From Podarcis bocagei (lineage: Eukaryota): 64,000 bases of DNA. The stretch lies in NCBI GenBank assembly GCA_964188305.1, contig OZ076892.1; one strand, 5' to 3'. Shown here piece after piece: positions 15,493 through 62,315 of the stretch. The notes beneath the pieces are model-generated. The model did no database searches. It was not told the DNA's origin and saw only the letters and a list, made by a program, of their open reading frames with translations. The translations under genes and the position numbers were made by a program. Each line of letters starts with the position of its first letter. Position 1 is the first letter of the stretch.

Positions 15493-15719
15493 ATGGAGCC
15501 GTCCACCTTTCCCGGTGCTGAACCCTACCCCGATTTCCCCTACAACAGCACCTTTCAAGACTTCGGGTCGACTTCTCTCACGACGTCCAACGCCACGAGT
15601 CAGTCCCCGATCAAGAACACGACTTCAATCATCATCGCCATCGCCATCACTGCCCTGTATTCAGTCGTCTGCGTGGTGGGGCTTTTGGGGAACATCCTGG
15701 TCATGTACGGCATTGTCAG
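15493..15719 (+). CDS. OPRD1: Delta opioid receptor coding exon 1 (N-terminus + TM1), 227 nt
   Basis: ATG at 15493 encodes MEPSTFPGAE...IAITALYSVVCVVGLLGNILVMYGIVR, matching opioid receptor TM1. N-glycosylation sequons at N18, N33 and N42. Donor CAG|GTAAGG at 15719/15720, phase 2. Confidence 0.96.
15495..15522 (-). promoter_or_regulatory. Second split RE1-like site, inverted, over codons 1-10
   Basis: Minus strand reads TTCAGCACC-(9 nt)-GGACGGCTCC, with one mismatch in the GGACAG core. Confidence 0.4.
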
Positions 15720-17457
15720 GTAAGGGCAGGATAGCCGGGATCTAAGGGGCTTATCCCTAGATGCTTCCACGGGAAAGTCCTATGCACGTCTCAGCCTTGG
15801 GTGGGCGCCCCAAGGAATATAGAGGCAGCGAGGATAGCAAGAGGCTATGCTGTGTATTGTGTAGGATGATCAGTAGAACTGTATGTGGCACTAACTTGGA
15901 GAGAAAAGTGTGTGCATGTGTGCGGGTCTGGGGAAGAAAGACATCACGTGCATGTTCACTGAACGGTGTGTAATACAATCATAAAGATAAGTGGGCGGAG
16001 AGAGAATGTATGGGATAATGCAGATTGTGTCTGGGAGAGAATGTAGCATGTTGCATCAAGTACACCACACCTTCACCTAAGAAATCCAGATATTTTCGGA
16101 TTGGCTGAGGACCCTACCTTGCCTCTGCGTTAAGCAATATATTACTACTATATGGAAGGGGGCAGAGCAGCAGGATGTTAGAACGTGGGGATTTCTTTCA
16201 GCTTCAGGAGACAGTTTTGTCTTGCAGCTCGATCCTAGGCAGGTCAGCTTAGAAGCTGAATTCAGTGGGGCTTGCATACTAAGCATAGGATCGCAGGCTT
16301 AATGTGTGCATTTGTGAATGCAAAACAACAAGAGGTCCATATGTTATTATGGGGGCTGGGGCAGGCAATTCCAGTTCATTGCATGGGACTTTGATTTTAT
16401 GTATGGGCTCTATGATTCTGTCCATTCTGTGGATGTTATATGTGGGTGCATTTGAGTGGAGGGGGGCATTTCATAACAGGAAATGCATTGCCTTTGTAAT
16501 GGAGTAGCTTCTAATCTGAGAGACCAGCTGCACAATGAATACTAGTTATATTGATCTGAGTGTTTATGAACTGGGCATGGGGGAACATGATTTAGTTCTT
16601 TCACATTGACCACATGTTCCTGCATGCAAGAGTGCCAACTCTGATTTCATTGCAGTGCGAGTATACTGTACATACACAATGTGTGTATCGTGCATGTATA
16701 AGCACCTACTTATCTTGAACATGGCATGTTCCTTTAACTCTTGGATTGGTTCATAATAAATGAAATTGGAAGTGTTTTTTCTATGCGTTTTTATGGTTAA
16801 ATCGCTTTGGGATGCTTTAAGGGAAGCGATTCATAAATGAAATGAATAAGCAATGCAGTCTTTTTATTGTAGGGAGACATTTACAGCAGCAGGTGCCTCT
16901 TGTTGAAGTGGCAGGGGTAACCATACTCAGCAGGACTATCCATGAAATCACAATCTTATGTAATAAATTCTGCCACTGGATCAACAGAATGAATTCTGCT
17001 CCTTCCTTAAATGCTTACTCTGTGCCATCAAAATGCTTCCTGTCCTGTCTAATAAATATAGGAAACTGTCTTGTACACAAAAGCAAATCATTGCTCCATC
17101 CAGCCCAGTATTTTAATTTTGATTGGAGGTAATTAGGGGAGCACAAGCAATGGTTTTACTCTCCTGCTTAGGGTTATGGTGAGAGCTTCGCTCTCAAAAT
17201 TGTGTTTTGCATTAACTGTTTTCTAGCATCGCTTGTGCTCATATATAGCCTCCATGAAAGCAAGTTCCTCAGGTGTTAAGGGGTTTGGGCAAACAAGAGA
17301 GTGACTCATAGTGGCTTTTTATTTCAAGGTACTTGTTTTGCAACACATGTATACATCTGCACAGACCCGCATCCCATGAAAATCATGGTTCGTTGGGAGG
17401 CTGTTACCATTCGCACGTTTGGAGGGGAGGATTGCAGAGAAGAACACTCATTCTAGT

Positions 17458-54189: not shown

Positions 54190-56772
54190 TGTAGGAGTTA
54201 TCTATGCCAATACTGATAAGTCTTAAGATGAATGCCTTTGGCAAAATGCAGCAAACCTATCTGATGACTGCATGAGTGGGCTTGAATGGTGGAACAGTAC
54301 TTATTTATTTTTCTGTTCTAAAGTGTATCCCTGATGGTTGGTGGGCATGTGTTTCAAGATAGCCTAGTCATTTTGTCACAATGTACAGAGAGATCAATAT
54401 TGTTATCACTCCCCTCTTTGTGTAAATAACTGAGATACATGCTGGAACATTCTCATTTACATATCATAAATGCTGCCTTTCCAAAAGCAACTGAATCCTG
54501 GGTTTTCTGCTTTGCTTTCTAACCGCTCTGGTGACGATGCTTTTGAAAACCGATATCCAGGATTTAATGGGCCCTTAACAATATTCATGGGAAGAAGGAA
54601 CAGGGCCAAAAAAAAATTAGACAAATGAAAGAAAAAGAATAACTGATGCAGGATATAAATCTTTTTTTAAAAATCCTCCAAGGTTTAATGATAATGACAG
54701 TTTTCACAATGAAACTGTGAAACAGACTGCGTGGAAAGTGATGTTTCTCATTGGACATTTCTCAAGCAGAAGCTTGAGGGCCACCTTTCAAGATTGCTGC
54801 AGCAGTCAGCTTCCAAAAATAAACAGTGGGTTGGTTTAGTTGACCTCTAAGTACTCTTGCAAGTCTATGCTTTACTTTCGAGTAGTCCAGCTGATTTGCT
54901 GGAAATGCAAAACTATCGCTTCTAACCCTCTTAAAAATGCCACCCAGATTTCAGCACATACTTTCCGGCATTTAAGTCTTAGTGGTTCAGGCAGCTCTTA
55001 AGTGTGCATATTGGTCTAGAATAAAAGAAAGCACTGGTTCCAATGTGACAGCAGAAACTACTGGGCATGTGTGACGGCAGTCACACATTTCTTTGAGATG
55101 TTCAACTTTTCCCCTGCAATGATGGAGGGAAAACTAGTCACTCGTTTGAGCCCTTTGCTTCCTTGAATAATTTAAGCATTCAAATCCATATTTAATGGAT
55201 AAGTTCTTGTTCATCAAGACAGTAAAATGAAGGAAATGGATCCTGGTGGTAAAAAAGAGAGAAGAAAATCAAAGTTCTGGTCAGATATATTCCCTCTAGG
55301 AGAGATTAATGTGGGAAGGAAGGATATGAAAGAATAAAGGCGAAAGATGAGGGAAGGAGGCAGAACAATAAGGAGTCTGCTGAGGAGAAACTATAGTCAT
55401 TTCTTCGCTCTCCTTCTCCATGTTTCAATAAAAAATATATTGCATTTTCATTCCATCCTTTTTCCAAAGGGCTCAGTGGCCTCCCCCCCCCCACTGGATC
55501 TTTCCTGACAGCCCTGTGAACAAGTTTGGGCTAATAAACAGCAACAGTCTCCAGGTCTTCCAGGTGGTTTCATGGAGTAGGGTCTTCCAGCGCCAACATT
55601 TATTTATTGCATTTATTTTATTGCCTTTATATCCACCTTTTTTGTACAAGGAGCTCAAAGTGGTGCACACAGTTCTCCCTCTCCTCATTTTATCCCCACA
55701 ACAACCCTGTGAAGTAGGTCAGGCTGAGAGGTGACTGGCCCAAGGTCACCCAGGGAGCTTCGTAACCAAGTGGGGATTTGAACCCTGGTCTCCCGGGTCC
55801 TAGGCCAACACTCTAACCCCTGCACCACACTGGCTCCTTATTCTAAAGGCTACTTCAGCTTTTCCCAGCCTCGGGTCCCCAGATCACCCTCCTGTCCTGT
55901 TTTTTCCAGCAACTGGTATTCAGAAGCAAACTGCCTCCGCCAGTGTGGGTACAACATAGCCTGACCATGGTGGTCCATGTATTGGTAACCTCAAGGCTGG
56001 TTTACTGCAATGCACTCTGTGTGGGGCTGCCCTTGGGTCTGGTTTGGAAGCTACAGCTGGTGCAGAATGCAGTGACCAGACTGCTGGTGGAAGTTTCTGG
56101 CTGAGAACGTGTAGCAGTGTTGTTAAAACAGCTGCATCAGCTACCCACCTGCTACCCAGCCAAGTTCATAGTCCTTGTATTGACTTACAAAGTCCTACTG
56201 AAAGAGTTTAGGAGGGGAGGATGCATATGGAATTAATTCTTTCCCAAGTTCAGTATGAACTGACCTGGCTGAAACCTCCTGAACTAATGAGCAGGCATGA
56301 ACCACAGAGCTATCCTTGCCATTTTGCACTTCTCCAAACTTTGTGATGCAGTTCTCTGCTTTAAAAGGTAATGAGACGTATATTAAAAATGTGTACTGAT
56401 TTAGCAATGCAGCACTTGTGAAAAAAAATATGGATTTTCATGCATTTTTTTATTAGAAAAGCAGATTAATGCTATTGGACCAGATGTATAAATGAATGCA
56501 TTTGAAACTGACAGGGACCAGAGGAAGAATGATAAATCCATCCCCAGAGGTGGGGGCCTGAATTTCACATACTATTTTGAACTAACTGTATCATTAATTG
56601 CAGGCCTCTTTCTTTTTTCACATCAGCTAAACAAGGGTACAACAACACAGCCGAGAAATCTGATAGCTTGGGGGCCTTTGTTCATCCAGACCAGGAAACA
56701 TCCATGCTTCCTGGGCAGAGAGCAAGCATAATCTACAGTTGACACGCCTTTCCCTTTGTCTCCTCCCTGCAG

Positions 56773-57122
56773 ATACACCAAGATGAAAACAGCCACCAAT
56801 ATCTACATCTTCAACTTGGCCTTGGCAGATGCCTTGGCCACTAGCACACTGCCCTTCCAGAGTGCTAAGTACCTGATGGAGACCTGGCCTTTTGGGGAGC
56901 TGCTCTGCAAGGTTGTCCTCTCCATTGACTACTACAACATGTTTACGAGCATCTTCACCCTCACCATGATGAGCGTGGACCGGTACATAGCGGTCTGCCA
57001 TCCAGTCAAGGCCCTGGATTTCCGGACCCCAGCAAAAGCGAAGTTAATCAATGTTTGCATCTGGGTTCTTTCGTCTGTCATTGGGGTGCCCATCATGATC
57101 ATGGCTGTCACCCGATCTCAAG
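56773..57122 (+). CDS. OPRD1: Delta opioid receptor coding exon 2 (ICL1-TM4), 350 nt
   Basis: Acceptor ctccctgcAG at 56771-56772. Encodes (R)[46 protein letters not shown]...SIDYYNMF...[22 protein letters not shown]; [17 protein letters not shown] is delta-type. Ends at CAAG|GCAAGT (GC donor), phase 1. Confidence 0.96.
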
Positions 57123-58881
57123 GCAAGTGTCTTGTTGCCACATTCCAGTCAATCCTCCTTTGTGTGGGCTTTGGAAGGCAGAGACACCACTTTCCTGCTC
57201 TCTAAACCACAGCCAGAGATGCCCATAAGGCTGTACATAGATGTGTGTGATTTTATCAGTGAGTCTGCTGTAAAAGTTCCCTCACCACATTTTAGACACA
57301 CGTAGAACCTTCTGACTTGAACTAAGCTTAGGGAACATTGGATCTTTCCGTTTTCAGTGGAAGGCATATTAGCACAGCACTGTTTCAAGCATGAGGCCAC
57401 CTCCCCACACCACAATACTAATTGGCTAGTCCCTGTGTCAGTCATGAACCTCCTCCGACTTTTCAGAGCACTTTTGAAACTGTTCTGCCACAAATAGCAG
57501 CTTCTTTCCTGCAATAGATAGAAAATGTCTCCCTCCCCAAAATAGTTCCTATGGGACCTTGGCAGAGGACAAAATAGTGTTTGGTTTTTCAAAAGTTAAA
57601 GAACCCTTCCCTGCACACCATATCCCCAACCTTGTTGTCTATTTAAAACCATATATCACCCATTTAAAGTAAATTCAACCATCTAGTCATCAGGAGGTGG
57701 ATCTGAAGAACCACCAAGAACAACAAAGAAAAAAAAAAGGTAGTTCTAAACCACAGGACACTAAATACCACCACCTTGTCTAAACTCTAGGAAAAGGAGC
57801 TATCTAAAAGCATGGTTCCAGAGACTCCCATTTCTGGAATGGGAAATGCAAGTCTCATGGGCTTATACTGTTCCGCCTCAAAGACAAAGCACGTGTTGAA
57901 AGTCCCAAATTCTTCTCCATCTCAGATTTTGATTCTGAGCCAGAGAAGATTCCCCTACTGGATGTGGAGGGCACAATGAGTCACATGGCTGAGATGGCGA
58001 ATTGGGAGTGGCAGCTAGCTGGCCAGTTGATTGGTTAGCTCGCTAGCCCTGCCACCACTTCTCCCTACCAACATCTGCCCCACCCTGCTGCTTTCCTCCA
58101 ACCTTCATGGTAGCTGCCAACAAAGGCATGAGTGCTCAGTGCCTCGCTCTGAGAAATGGGTGAGGCACTGTGGGTGAAGTTGCTTGGAGTTACTGTTTAA
58201 CATTTACCTTAAGTCTTTAAAGCCTCTTTGCTAGCAGTGAGCAAGCAACCAGGCCAGCAGGCAAGTTAGGTTGGAGGAAGCAGCAGGAAGATAGGTGGCG
58301 GAGGCAGTTTCAGGATCTGCAATGTCTTGCACTGACCCTGCCTTTTGTGTGCTGGAGCAGTGAGAGGTAAATGTCCCTTCCTTCCTTGGCTGGCCACAGC
58401 CAGAACACCAGAAGAGGGCTGAAAGTCTTTGAAAGATCATGACAGGGAGGCAGGCTTGGGTGGTGAGGGAGAGAGCCTGTAGGCTCACGGAGAAGAGCTT
58501 CCACTTGCATTATTGTTGTTGTTGCTGCTGCTGCTGTTGTTGCTATTAATATCAGTAGTAGTATTACTTGTATTATCAATATTACTATTAGTATTAAAAA
58601 ATGAAATCTGCTTTATTCGCTTTGTGAGTTCCAGTTAGTTGATTGAGTCATAAAGAAGACACTCTTAGGAATACTCCATTATGTTGGCATGAGTTAGGAG
58701 TTACAATATCAGCAAGTCCTGATAGTCCTACATTTGCTTCAATGAACAGACGGCAGTGAAAATCAGCATCTGTGCTGATGGAGCCTTGGGAAATAATGTC
58801 CAAGCTGGACCCCTCTCTATCTCTGTATCTCCATCTGCTGAATGAAAGTCACCTCACTCTCTTCCTCTCCTTTTGCTGCAG
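57123..58881 (+). other. OPRD1: OPRD1 intron 2 (GC-AG)
   Basis: Starts GCAAGT and ends CTGCAG. This donor gives TRSQGGIVMC, colinear with mammalian TRPRDGAVVC. Confidence 0.85.
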
Positions 58882-59414
58882 GTGGCATCGTGATGTGTCT
58901 CCTGCAGTTTCCTGAACCTCAGATCTACTGGGACACAGTCACCAAGATCTGCGTCTTCATCTTTGCCTTCTTGGTTCCCATCTTGGTCATCACCATCTGC
59001 TACGGGCTCATGATTCTCCGCCTGAAGAGTGTCCGCCTCCTCTCAGGCTCCAAGGAGAAGGACCGCAACCTGCGCCGTATCACACGCATGGTGCTGGTGG
59101 TGGTGGCTGCCTTCATCATCTGCTGGACACCCATCCAGATCTTTGTCATTGTTTGGACCCTGGTGGGCATCGACAAGAAGAACCCCTATGTGATGGCCAG
59201 CCTCCACTTTTGCATTGCCCTGGGTTACACCAACAGCAGCCTCAATCCTGTCCTCTATGCTTTCTTGGATGAGAACTTCAAGAGGTGCTTCCGAGAATTC
59301 TGCCTCCCCTTCCGGTCACACAGGGAGCAGAGCAGCTTCAGCCGGGCCAGGAACACCACGCGAGAGCGTGTCTCGACTTGCGCTCCTTCTGAAGTCCTCA
59401 ATAAGTCGGCATGA
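58882..59414 (+). CDS. OPRD1: Delta opioid receptor coding exon 3 (ECL2-TM7, C-tail), 533 nt including TGA
   Basis: Acceptor ttttgctgcAG at 58880-58881. Encodes [11 protein letters not shown]...[17 protein letters not shown]...CWTP...IVWTLV...[27 protein letters not shown]...SSFSRAR..RERV. W284 and the C-tail are delta-type. Exon sum 227+350+533=1110 nt is in frame. Confidence 0.97.
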
Positions 59415-62315
59415 CTAGACATGGACAGCCACAAAAGAGGCTCCCGTGGACGCAGAGTGGATGAACTGCAGTCAGAAGTGACCCAGGTCACAACTACAGA
59501 ATTTTAGCTGAACTGTAGGAATGGCCAGAAGGGGGAAAAAGGAGCAGTGCACAAACATTGTGGACTTTTGCAAGTAGTTGCAAATGTTAAGTCCCCCCTA
59601 CAACCATGAACAGAGTACCCACAAGAGAGGCATCAACTGCCAAGTGATATTTGGGTGTGAATTTCTTTGGTTCTGAAGTGAATTCTTAAGACTGGCATTG
59701 ATTGAATGTCTTTTACAGGGTTGATGTTTTCTTAATCATCCTGTGTTGGCTTTAAGTAATTTTGAAAAGTTCACTGCACATATCTTTGTTATGTTGTAGA
59801 TGGTTGGGCCATTGATTAACACATCAGTGTTCATTCTGTTCCTCCATTCATTATTTGCTAGTATTTTGTAGGGATTTACGGTGGCTCTGTATACTTCCTG
59901 GATTACCAGACTGCACTGTTGAAGAGACATCTCAAGTCAGATCACTGACTCTCTAAACTTGCAAGTTGCTCTGTGGACTCTGTGTCCCCACTCAAAAATA
60001 CACACTGCATTTCTTTTTTAATCAAAGCAAAACGAAACTGGCTAGGGAAATGCCCTGTAGAGGCAATTATTTTCCCAGAACACTCCATTCACAGTGATTT
60101 GGAGCGGAAATGTTGACTAAATATTAAAACAGTTTGTTCTTCACATGGATCATGTCCCGTTCCACCCTGCTGCATCACCCCTTCTTCTATACAAGTCAGT
60201 GGTGATATCTCCCTCCCTGAGGCAGAAGGGGTTGTATCCCCAAAAATCCAGCAGGGGAGCAAAAGTCCAACAACACATGGGGTAGTAAGGTTCTAGCTGG
60301 AGTACATTGGCAGTTCCCCCATCCTAGTATTTCCTGAAGGTTCTTGCTCTTTTCCCCACCCCTATTACCCCCTATGCATACTACTGTATCCACTCCAAAA
60401 CGCTAATGCTTCCCTTGCAGGGGAACCAGTTCAACTATCATTCTGAAATTTGGTGTGCTTCATCCCATCATAAAGGCAGACTATGCCTGCAAATTGCATC
60501 ACATGTTGGCAGAAAACAAAATACATTTTCTTTCTTTTCTAAATCAAACTTTAAAAGTGTCGTTTACACACACACTAAACCCTAGTTGTATCTCCTAACA
60601 TTTGGCTGGCTTAATCCACTCTGGAGGAACTAACGTGCCTGCAAATTTCATCCACTCATATGAAAAAAAATATATAGATAGTCTTTTCTTTTAGATTCCT
60701 CGTTTTAGTGAAGATGGGGGAGCTTCATTCTCAACAAATATAATTTTGTCTCAAATTATGAGTCAAACTGGAAAACTACAGAGTGGCTCCAAAACTGCTG
60801 CTTCCCAAAGCTACAGATAAAAACTGAATCTTGTGGCCAGTGCACACCCTGAGGGTTTTGACTCCACTTTAACAGATAATGGAAGTATTGAAGTGATGAA
60901 GTACAACACATTGCATAAGATAATGTTTTTGTTTCCTTTTGTTTTTTAGTGAACATGCCACTGGCTACCAAATTTAAATTCAGTTATTCATTCAGAGGAA
61001 CAGATATTTGATTTTGATTTGCAGATTTGAAACAGTCAATTTATTCCAGCTCTTGCCAGGCGAGGAGAAGGGAATGCCATAGTACTGGGAAAGGACTCTA
61101 GACCTCCGCTGGTAAGAGCTTAATCACAAAGTAATCAGTACTGCTCAGCAACAGAAATGGGAATGTTGTGGTTTTTCATGCACTGCTCATCTGTGTTATT
61201 ACAGTTTTATCTCTCTGTGATAAGCAAAAATTGGTAAACCCATTAACTTGCTTCTCTAATATGAGCTGCCCTTCTAGCTCTGGGAAGAGGACCATGCACC
61301 CAATTGAACTCTGGACAGGGAGACAGAAATGAAAAGTTGGTGGCACCTCGTGCATGGGTTGCCTTTGGATCCTCCTCATAATCAACAGCAAGTTGCACCA
61401 CTGCAGGGAGAGTCACTCTTTACCCTCGTTGCTCCACTGTGCCAAAGCAACACAAATCCAAGGAAGCCTGCAAGTTCAAATCAGGATTCTCCAATAGCAC
61501 AAAAGCCTTCCTTCAATTGTGAAGGCTCCCTTCTCTTTTGTATTTTCCTCGCCGTTCTGACATTAGAACCCTGGGGAGCCAGCTAAAGCCTTGCTACATC
61601 CGCTCAGGAACTCCAGCAGCGAAGAAAGGCACACATTGAACTGCCCCTTATTGTACATATCAATTTCCCAGGAATGCCCCAGCGTTACTTGGGCGGCAGT
61701 TCCTGCGTGAACAAGCTTTGGGACATCAGCAACTGAGGCCTGTGTGTCATTTTGGTGTGTCTGGTGTTCAACCGCTTTCTGCATTGTTGTTTACTACTGC
61801 CTTACCCCCATGCGAGTCAGATGGCCCCTCAGCTTCTCCGGTGTGATATCTGACCTACCTAGGTCACAGTATCTGGAGTGGGGGGGGGGAGATTGGTGGC
61901 AAAACACAAATCTACACAAGGAACATTTGTATTTCAAAAACAAAACTGACTCAATAAAAGGGGTCAATGAACTGCAAAGTATTTGATATTCATTTTGATT
62001 TATTTCAATCTGCCGTACCTCAAGGATTTAGTGCAGCACCCCAGAATCCTGTTTTGCAATGCTCATCACTTTGCATCCCATTAGGTAGGCACAGTAACAG
62101 CAGGTGCAGCAAGTTAGTGAACCTTTTTCAGACTAAGTCCTACTTTCACCTTGTGGAAACCTGTTGGGAGCAGCACTCCAGTAGTGGGCAGGACTGAACC
62201 CAAATGTGGACTGAGGCACAGACACAGAGCTATTTCCCATGGAAACGGTGTCATGCCATTTCACTCAAGTGTCACCTCCCATTTTTGCCATAGATTTTCT
62301 TTTCAAAGTTTGTAA

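Follow-up and report, generated by a model that had tools for sequence, protein, structure and literature searches.

The classical opioid receptors (mu, MOR; delta, DOR; and kappa, KOR) have a histidine at position 6.52 (Ballesteros-Weinstein numbering), whereas the nociceptin receptor (NOP, encoded by OPRL1) has a glutamine there, together with Ala5.39 and Thr7.39. Meng et al., in 1996, reportedly shifted NOP towards opioid binding by mutations including the Gln-to-His change at 6.52, and the MOR mutants H297Q and H297N of Spivak et al. (1997) are said to still bind ligands, with an abnormal response to antagonists. In the opioid literature, His6.52 is treated as a conserved residue that anchors the ligand "message" (PMC7881245, PMC8707250): with K5.39 and Y3.33, it bridges the phenol of morphinans or of the peptide Tyr1 via ordered waters, and its mutation or protonation lowers the affinity for DAMGO and naloxone (PMC7881245, PMC8707250, PMC8840597). 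The MOR H6.52F mutant is signalling-dead in yeast (bioRxiv 10.64898/2026.05.26.727816), and in NOP the Q280A mutation was reported to abolish nociceptin binding (PMC8840597). His6.52 is also a candidate proton sensor.

For squamates (lizards and snakes), the DOR functional data found in the literature searched are those of Bean et al. (2022), and none beyond them: these authors assayed the Python bivittatus DOR in cholesterol-producing yeast (PMC9130329, Supplementary Data 6). A veterinary review of the same year gives reptile delta receptor data only for turtles, and none for squamates (PMC9420515). The EC50 values of Bean et al. (nM; PMC9130329) are as follows:

Morphine: python, no activity; human, 2668; mouse, 3824; zebrafish, 1342; tetra, 2254
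DAMGO: python, no activity; human, 4976; mouse, 9417; zebrafish, partial; tetra, partial
Met-enkephalin: python, 4694; human, 8.9; mouse, 31; zebrafish, 97; tetra, 302
Deltorphin A: python, 2364; human, 8.7; mouse, 17; zebrafish, 2799; tetra, 1987
SNC80: python, 3312; human, 2.6; mouse, 7.1; zebrafish, >50000; tetra, >50000
Dynorphin A: python, 2711; human, 1076; mouse, 969; zebrafish, 1151; tetra, 1000

Compared with human DOR, python DOR was about 500-fold weaker for Met-enkephalin and about 2.5-fold weaker for dynorphin A, and its maximal fraction of signalling cells was normal (22-35%) (PMC9130329). Bean et al. wrote that python DOR "weakly responded", with no residue-level explanation and no link to position 6.52 (PMC9130329).

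We analysed a stretch of lizard DNA of 64,000 nucleotides (hereafter the window), which has no N runs and in which an earlier note had recognised a delta opioid receptor gene (OPRD1) with glutamine instead of histidine at 6.52. Using a six-frame motif scan of the window, we located the rest of OPRD1 on the + strand. Once spliced, the three coding exons form an open frame of 369 codons, in which the CAG of the CWTPIQIF motif is codon 278, as had been counted. The features are as follows:

15493..15719, + strand: OPRD1 coding exon 1, from Met1 (ATG at 15493) to the first two bases of codon 76, encoding the N-terminus and TM1; GT donor at 15720
56773..57122, + strand: OPRD1 coding exon 2, encoding TM2-TM4 with the DRY motif; D128 at 56927-56929; AG acceptor at 56771-56772
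57123..57128, + strand: non-canonical GC donor of intron 2 (exon end AAG, then GCAAGT), the sole frame-keeping junction into exon 3
58882..59414, + strand: OPRD1 coding exon 3, encoding TM5-TM7 and the C-tail; TGA stop at 59412-59414; AG acceptor at 58880-58881
58944..58946, + strand: Lys214 (5.39), the classical state (Ala in NOP)
59121..59144, + strand: TM6 motif CWTPIQIF, residues 273-280 (TGC TGG ACA CCC ATC CAG ATC TTT)
59136..59138, + strand: CAG, Gln278 (6.52), where classical opioid receptors have His
59214..59216, + strand: Ile304 (7.39), the classical state (Thr in NOP)

Intron 1 is 41 kb long. The GC donor of intron 2 also occurs in a gecko and a sea turtle, and is GT in two agamid lizards and in the frog Ascaphus; the GC-AG intron thus looks like an old feature, conserved in sauropsids and converted by agamids. 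Intron 2 also contains, on the upstream side of exon 3, a low-complexity run rich in TGT, TGC and ATT (58500-58620), and a short repeat lies at 58811-58839.

The identity of the gene rests on the following lines of evidence. First, exons 2 and 3 both match the rhodopsin-family seven-transmembrane domain (Pfam PF00001, 7tm_1), with E-values of 4e-38 and 2e-26, respectively. Second, searched with phmmer against all PDB chains, exon 3 scored best with DOR (285 bits), followed by MOR (245 bits), KOR (232 bits) and NOP (205 bits), while exon 2 gave 234, 206 and 201 bits with DOR, MOR and KOR, respectively, and about 109 of its 115 residues are identical to those of human DOR chains. Third, the spliced protein is identical at 368 of 369 positions to the annotated DOR of Podarcis muralis (XP_028594499) and at 367 of 369 to that of Lacerta agilis, which indicates that the window comes from a lacertid wall lizard and carries its OPRD1 orthologue. 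Fourth, in the gene tree, the protein is placed inside the clade of squamate DORs. The assignment to the delta receptor made in the earlier note thus stands, and the gene is an intact and, judging from its sequence, apparently functional OPRD1 of a Podarcis wall lizard. The protein lacks the His6.52 of classical opioid receptors, having Gln278 in its place; since this histidine is a trait common to the classical receptors and not the basis of orthology, the gene is still filed as OPRD1. As regards transcripts, an RNA-seq run of a sister species, of which about 12% was read, gave 0 reads on exon 3, and small runs guessed to be RNA contained 26-47% of the words.

Around Gln278, the ligand pocket is that of a delta receptor. 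The lizard protein has D128, Y129, K214, W274, I277, V281, W284, L300, I304 and Y308, and thereby retains the delta-type residues W6.58 (W284) and L7.35 (L300). The placing of K214 in WDTVTK and of I304 in CIALGY, and the conservation of D128 and W284, were all as previously described. The pocket set of human DOR, which we take to comprise Y56, Q105, K108, Y109, L125, D128, Y129, M132, K214, V217, F218, W274, I277, V281, W284, L300, I304 and Y308, is present by number in the lizard protein, and none of these residues is substituted in the alignments of exons 2 and 3 with human DOR (Y56 belongs to exon 1). The human PDB chains align CWAPIHIF opposite the lizard glutamine, in agreement with the presence of His at 6.52 in human DOR. 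The earlier description of a single NOP-like residue within an otherwise classical delta pocket is therefore correct.

The CAG codon was found again in independent sequence reads. We used Logan contigs from three independent DNA runs (one that comes from a different study and bears the window's species label, and two with sister-species labels), each of which spans positions 58650-59650 in one piece at 10-13x. The three runs show 14 differences from the window, none of them at 59136-59138, so that a CAC or CAT codon misread in the assembly is refuted. One of the differences, a G>A change at 59382 in the two sister-species runs, replaces Ala360 by the Thr found in P. muralis and L. agilis; Ala360 in the window is the sole protein difference from P. 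muralis (A360T).

The distribution of Gln278 was established on orthologues retrieved by searches with exon 3, then with a snake DOR, together with cluster listings; this DOR sampling is without tuatara, crocodilians, chameleons and dibamids. CWTPIQIF, with Gln278, was present in all non-agamid squamates retrieved, i.e. in 33 named species besides that of the window. These are seven geckos (Sphaerodactylus, two Gekko, Heteronotia, Paroedura, Eublepharis and Euleptes), three comprising skinks and a cordylid relative (Tiliqua, Lerista and Hemicordylus), six lacertoids (two Podarcis, Lacerta, Zootoca, Salvator and Rhineura), Varanus, four pleurodont iguanians (two Anolis, Sceloporus and Phrynosoma) and the 12 snakes retrieved, 12 out of 12, from the pythonid Liasis to Crotalus. 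Both sampled agamids, Pogona vitticeps (in three gene copies) and Phrynocephalus forsythii, have His278. Gln278 is a genuine and fixed substitution, which is neither an error nor specific to one species, and the earlier question as to whether it is lineage-wide can be answered: it is squamate-wide and ancient, and was reversed in agamids.

Outside squamates, histidine predominates. It occupies position 6.52 in about 16 turtles, in all sampled birds, in mammals, in the frogs Bombina, Pseudophryne, Phyllobates and Ranitomeya and a caecilian, and in coelacanth, gar, bichir, sturgeon and about 90 teleost or other fish proteins. In the DOR search, 97 of 107 rows had His, and nine of the other ten were squamate Gln; the nearest non-squamate in a representative search, which is coarse (50% identity), also had His. 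The view that Gln is the common state outside mammals, which the earlier note had left as a possibility, is rejected by the His of turtles, birds, most amphibians, coelacanth and most fish. Sporadic glutamines do occur, in the frog Ascaphus truei (CAG, the four other frogs having His), in the oprd1b of the filefish Nelusetta ayraudi and 14 related Logan ORFs (CWSPIQI), in a group that clusters with Fundulus oprd1a, and in one further fish pair; Gln6.52 arose independently in Ascaphus and in some teleost delta paralogues. A change common to all opioid receptors of squamates is also rejected for MOR in snakes: the MORs of Python, Liasis, Naja, Crotalus and Erythrolamprus retain His (CWTPIHI), as do all 116 of 116 hits of the MOR search. 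The His-to-Gln change thus looks delta-specific, as compared with MOR and at least in snakes.

The history of the codon was traced with a maximum-likelihood tree of 40 full-length DORs (371 columns, column 278 included) and with genomic loci fetched for ten species. In the tree, squamates form one clade (SH-aLRT 95), in which geckos branch first and agamids are nested, and the 6.52 state requires three changes in the 40 rows (a gain on the squamate stem, the agamid reversal and a gain in Ascaphus). The codons at 6.52 are as follows:

Turtle Lepidochelys: CAC
Geckos Sphaerodactylus and Eublepharis, and skink Tiliqua: CAA
Window lacertid, Varanus, Anolis sagrei and python Liasis: CAG
Agamids Pogona and Phrynocephalus: CAT
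Frog Ascaphus: CAG

These codons agree with the accepted squamate tree, each step being a single third-position change. Glutamine would have a single origin, a transversion at the third position (CAY to CAA) that took place on the squamate stem; a silent CAA-to-CAG change would have followed in the common lineage of lacertoids, anguimorphs, iguanians and snakes (lacertoids and toxicoferans), and in agamids a CAG-to-CAT change would have led back to histidine. The gain of Gln is bracketed only between the split from turtles and archosaurs and the squamate crown. That the glutamine came from OPRL1 by gene conversion is unlikely, knowing that only the third codon base differs and that the flanking codons are those of Ile, not of the Val found in NOP.

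The region that carries Gln278 is highly constrained. Over the 125 codons of TM5-TM7, the window differs from python by 40 synonymous and 0 non-synonymous changes, and from geckos by 42 synonymous and 4 non-synonymous changes. These counts point to strong purifying selection on TM5-TM7 with its glutamine, which argues for OPRD1 function; a pseudogene or a relaxed constraint is ruled out by the 40:0 ratio against python. We also looked for squamate-diagnostic columns, defined as those with a residue present in at least 90% of the Gln-bearing squamates and in at most 10% of the outgroups. Four were found (32, 43, 278 and 368), of which 278 is the sole one in the seven-transmembrane core; the three others belong to the N- and C-terminal tails, and agamids undo only 278.

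Since Gln278 is genuine and the other pocket residues are classical, the lizard has a delta receptor in which an imidazole has been swapped for a carboxamide. From this finding, we propose that glutamine was gained on the squamate stem and reversed in agamids, within a delta pocket that is classical otherwise, and that it altered the pharmacology of the receptor; we regard this as the best explanation, and as a probable one rather than a secure one. This carboxamide, which is non-titratable, takes the place of the group that serves as the anchor of water-mediated hydrogen bonding to the Tyr1 or morphinan phenol. Such a receptor would still signal with opioid peptides, with a lower enkephalin potency; its response to morphinans would be much weaker, and a pH sensitivity due to His6.52, if any, would be lost. 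It would not be a receptor of the nociceptin type.

The python data of Bean et al. are plausibly explained by such an altered pharmacology (PMC9130329). The P. bivittatus DOR that was assayed, XP_025029975, is a squamate orthologue about 93% identical to the window protein, as judged from other snake DORs, and its N-terminus is identical to that of Liasis at 44 of 45 positions; its residue 278 is probably the Gln found in Liasis and in 11 other snakes. The python deficit is ligand-selective: morphinans no longer elicit a response, potency falls steeply for the shortest Tyr1 peptide, and the longer, many-contact peptide is hardly affected. Because the morphine response is gone yet maximal signalling is normal, this pattern does not correspond to a general expression defect. 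It is what the loss of the His-water-phenol anchor predicts, without being a proof of it, and Gln278 may account for the poor response of python DOR to morphine and enkephalin. Against this explanation, the human and python DORs have many other sequence differences, and potency in yeast depends on expression and trafficking. The EC50 of python DOR for deltorphin A is similar to those of the two His-bearing fish DORs, so that not all of the python weakness tracks position 6.52. A stronger proposal, in which Gln278 alone leaves squamate DOR with little response to morphinans, a marked drop in enkephalin sensitivity and no titratable proton sensor in its pocket, is one that we consider unlikely.

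The whole-animal data do not discriminate. Bearded dragons (His) respond to morphine, and corn snakes (Gln) do not; efficacy has also been reported for green iguanas, and tegus (Gln) were among the animals tested (PMC9420515). Morphine acts mainly via MOR, and these data do not track the residue at 6.52.

A second explanation, which we find possible although on balance doubtful, is that Gln278 is real and functionally near-neutral, delta receptors drifting between CAY and CAR, and that the weakness of python DOR comes from other residues or poor expression. His and Gln are indeed one third-position transversion apart; independent glutamines occur in Ascaphus, in the Nelusetta oprd1b and its 14 related ORFs and in the two other fish groups; agamids went back to His; and Met-enkephalin, deltorphin A, SNC80 and dynorphin A all still activate python DOR. 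Furthermore, Gln both donates and accepts hydrogen bonds, and the water network may be kept; the recurrence of Gln in Ascaphus and teleost paralogues, together with the agamid reversal, fits a well-tolerated, possibly mild substitution. However, His is otherwise invariant over hundreds of MOR, KOR and DOR sequences, and python DOR shows a complete loss of morphine activity with normal maximal signalling. Glutamine was also kept through the whole history of the squamate crown while its codon turned over silently, unlike a site that toggles freely.

A third explanation is that the pocket shifted towards that of the nociceptin receptor and that squamate DOR gained the recognition of nociceptin (N/OFQ) or another Phe1 peptide. 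Gln6.52 is the NOP state, and the loss of nociceptin binding reported for NOP Q280A (PMC8840597) speaks for this explanation, but only one NOP-diagnostic position is changed, K214, I304 and the IQI triplet being classical, and exon 3 scores 80 bits lower with NOP than with DOR; N/OFQ assays on squamate DORs are absent from the open-access literature searched, and we judge this explanation very improbable. Finally, the idea that CAG stems from faulty sequencing or assembly, or is an allele private to the animal sequenced, has next to no credibility given the concordance of the three independent DNA runs and the presence of Gln in 33 other named squamates, whose independent assemblies exclude an assembly error.

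In the open-access papers and preprints that we searched, there was no report of Gln6.52 in squamate DOR, nor of an H278Q-type mutant. The sequences themselves can be found in public databases under delta-type opioid receptor annotations; what appears to be new is the recognition of the pattern. Its meaning is fourfold. First, a glutamine kept since the base of crown squamates under strong purifying selection would imply that His6.52 is not obligatory for a working delta receptor. Second, the agamid reversal offers natural wild-type/mutant pairs, namely lacertid or python versus agamid. Third, Gln278 provides a specific and testable reason for the weak responses of python DOR to morphine and enkephalin. 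Fourth, caution is advisable in extrapolating the pharmacology of mammalian delta ligands to squamates in veterinary analgesia. If the stronger proposal on Gln278 is true, about 11,000 lizard and snake species use a delta receptor without the "invariant" His6.52, for which agamids would serve as a natural control; it would provide a molecular entry point to the erratic opioid analgesia reported in snakes and lizards, and a natural test of the role of His6.52 in a classical opioid receptor.

As compared with known receptors, the lizard gene has the same three coding exons as human OPRD1 (PDB 4N6H, 6PT2 and 8F7S), and its product is of similar length (369 versus 372 amino acids), with the numbering in register. 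Exon 3 is highly similar in the two species, whereas the N-terminus is divergent. From human to lizard, His278 is replaced by Gln, and there are D288G, R291K, R292K, L295Y, V297M and A299S substitutions near ECL3/TM7. The lizard DOR resembles NOP by its Gln6.52 in a CWTP.Q.F TM6 motif and differs from it by IQI instead of VQV (NOP-like representatives have CWTPVQV), and by K214 and I304 instead of Ala5.39 and Thr7.39. Gln6.52 alone thus links it to NOP, whose PDB chains rank under all DOR, MOR and KOR chains.

Other known relatives are the agamid DORs of Pogona vitticeps and Phrynocephalus forsythii, squamate orthologues of about 90% identity, which have the squamate-specific tail residues S32, T43 and S368 like other squamates. 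They differ from the window protein by His278 (CAT) and R261H (6.35), and from the window gene by the GT donor of intron 2 instead of GC; a TM5 Ile and NPILY are further features common to both. In Pogona, three DOR proteins that are almost identical come from distinct contigs, and one of them carries V281F at pocket position 6.55. As oprd1 of Pogona is ZW sex-linked, on the sex microchromosome (PMC3880147), these three proteins may be Z and W copies, or they may come from separate assemblies.
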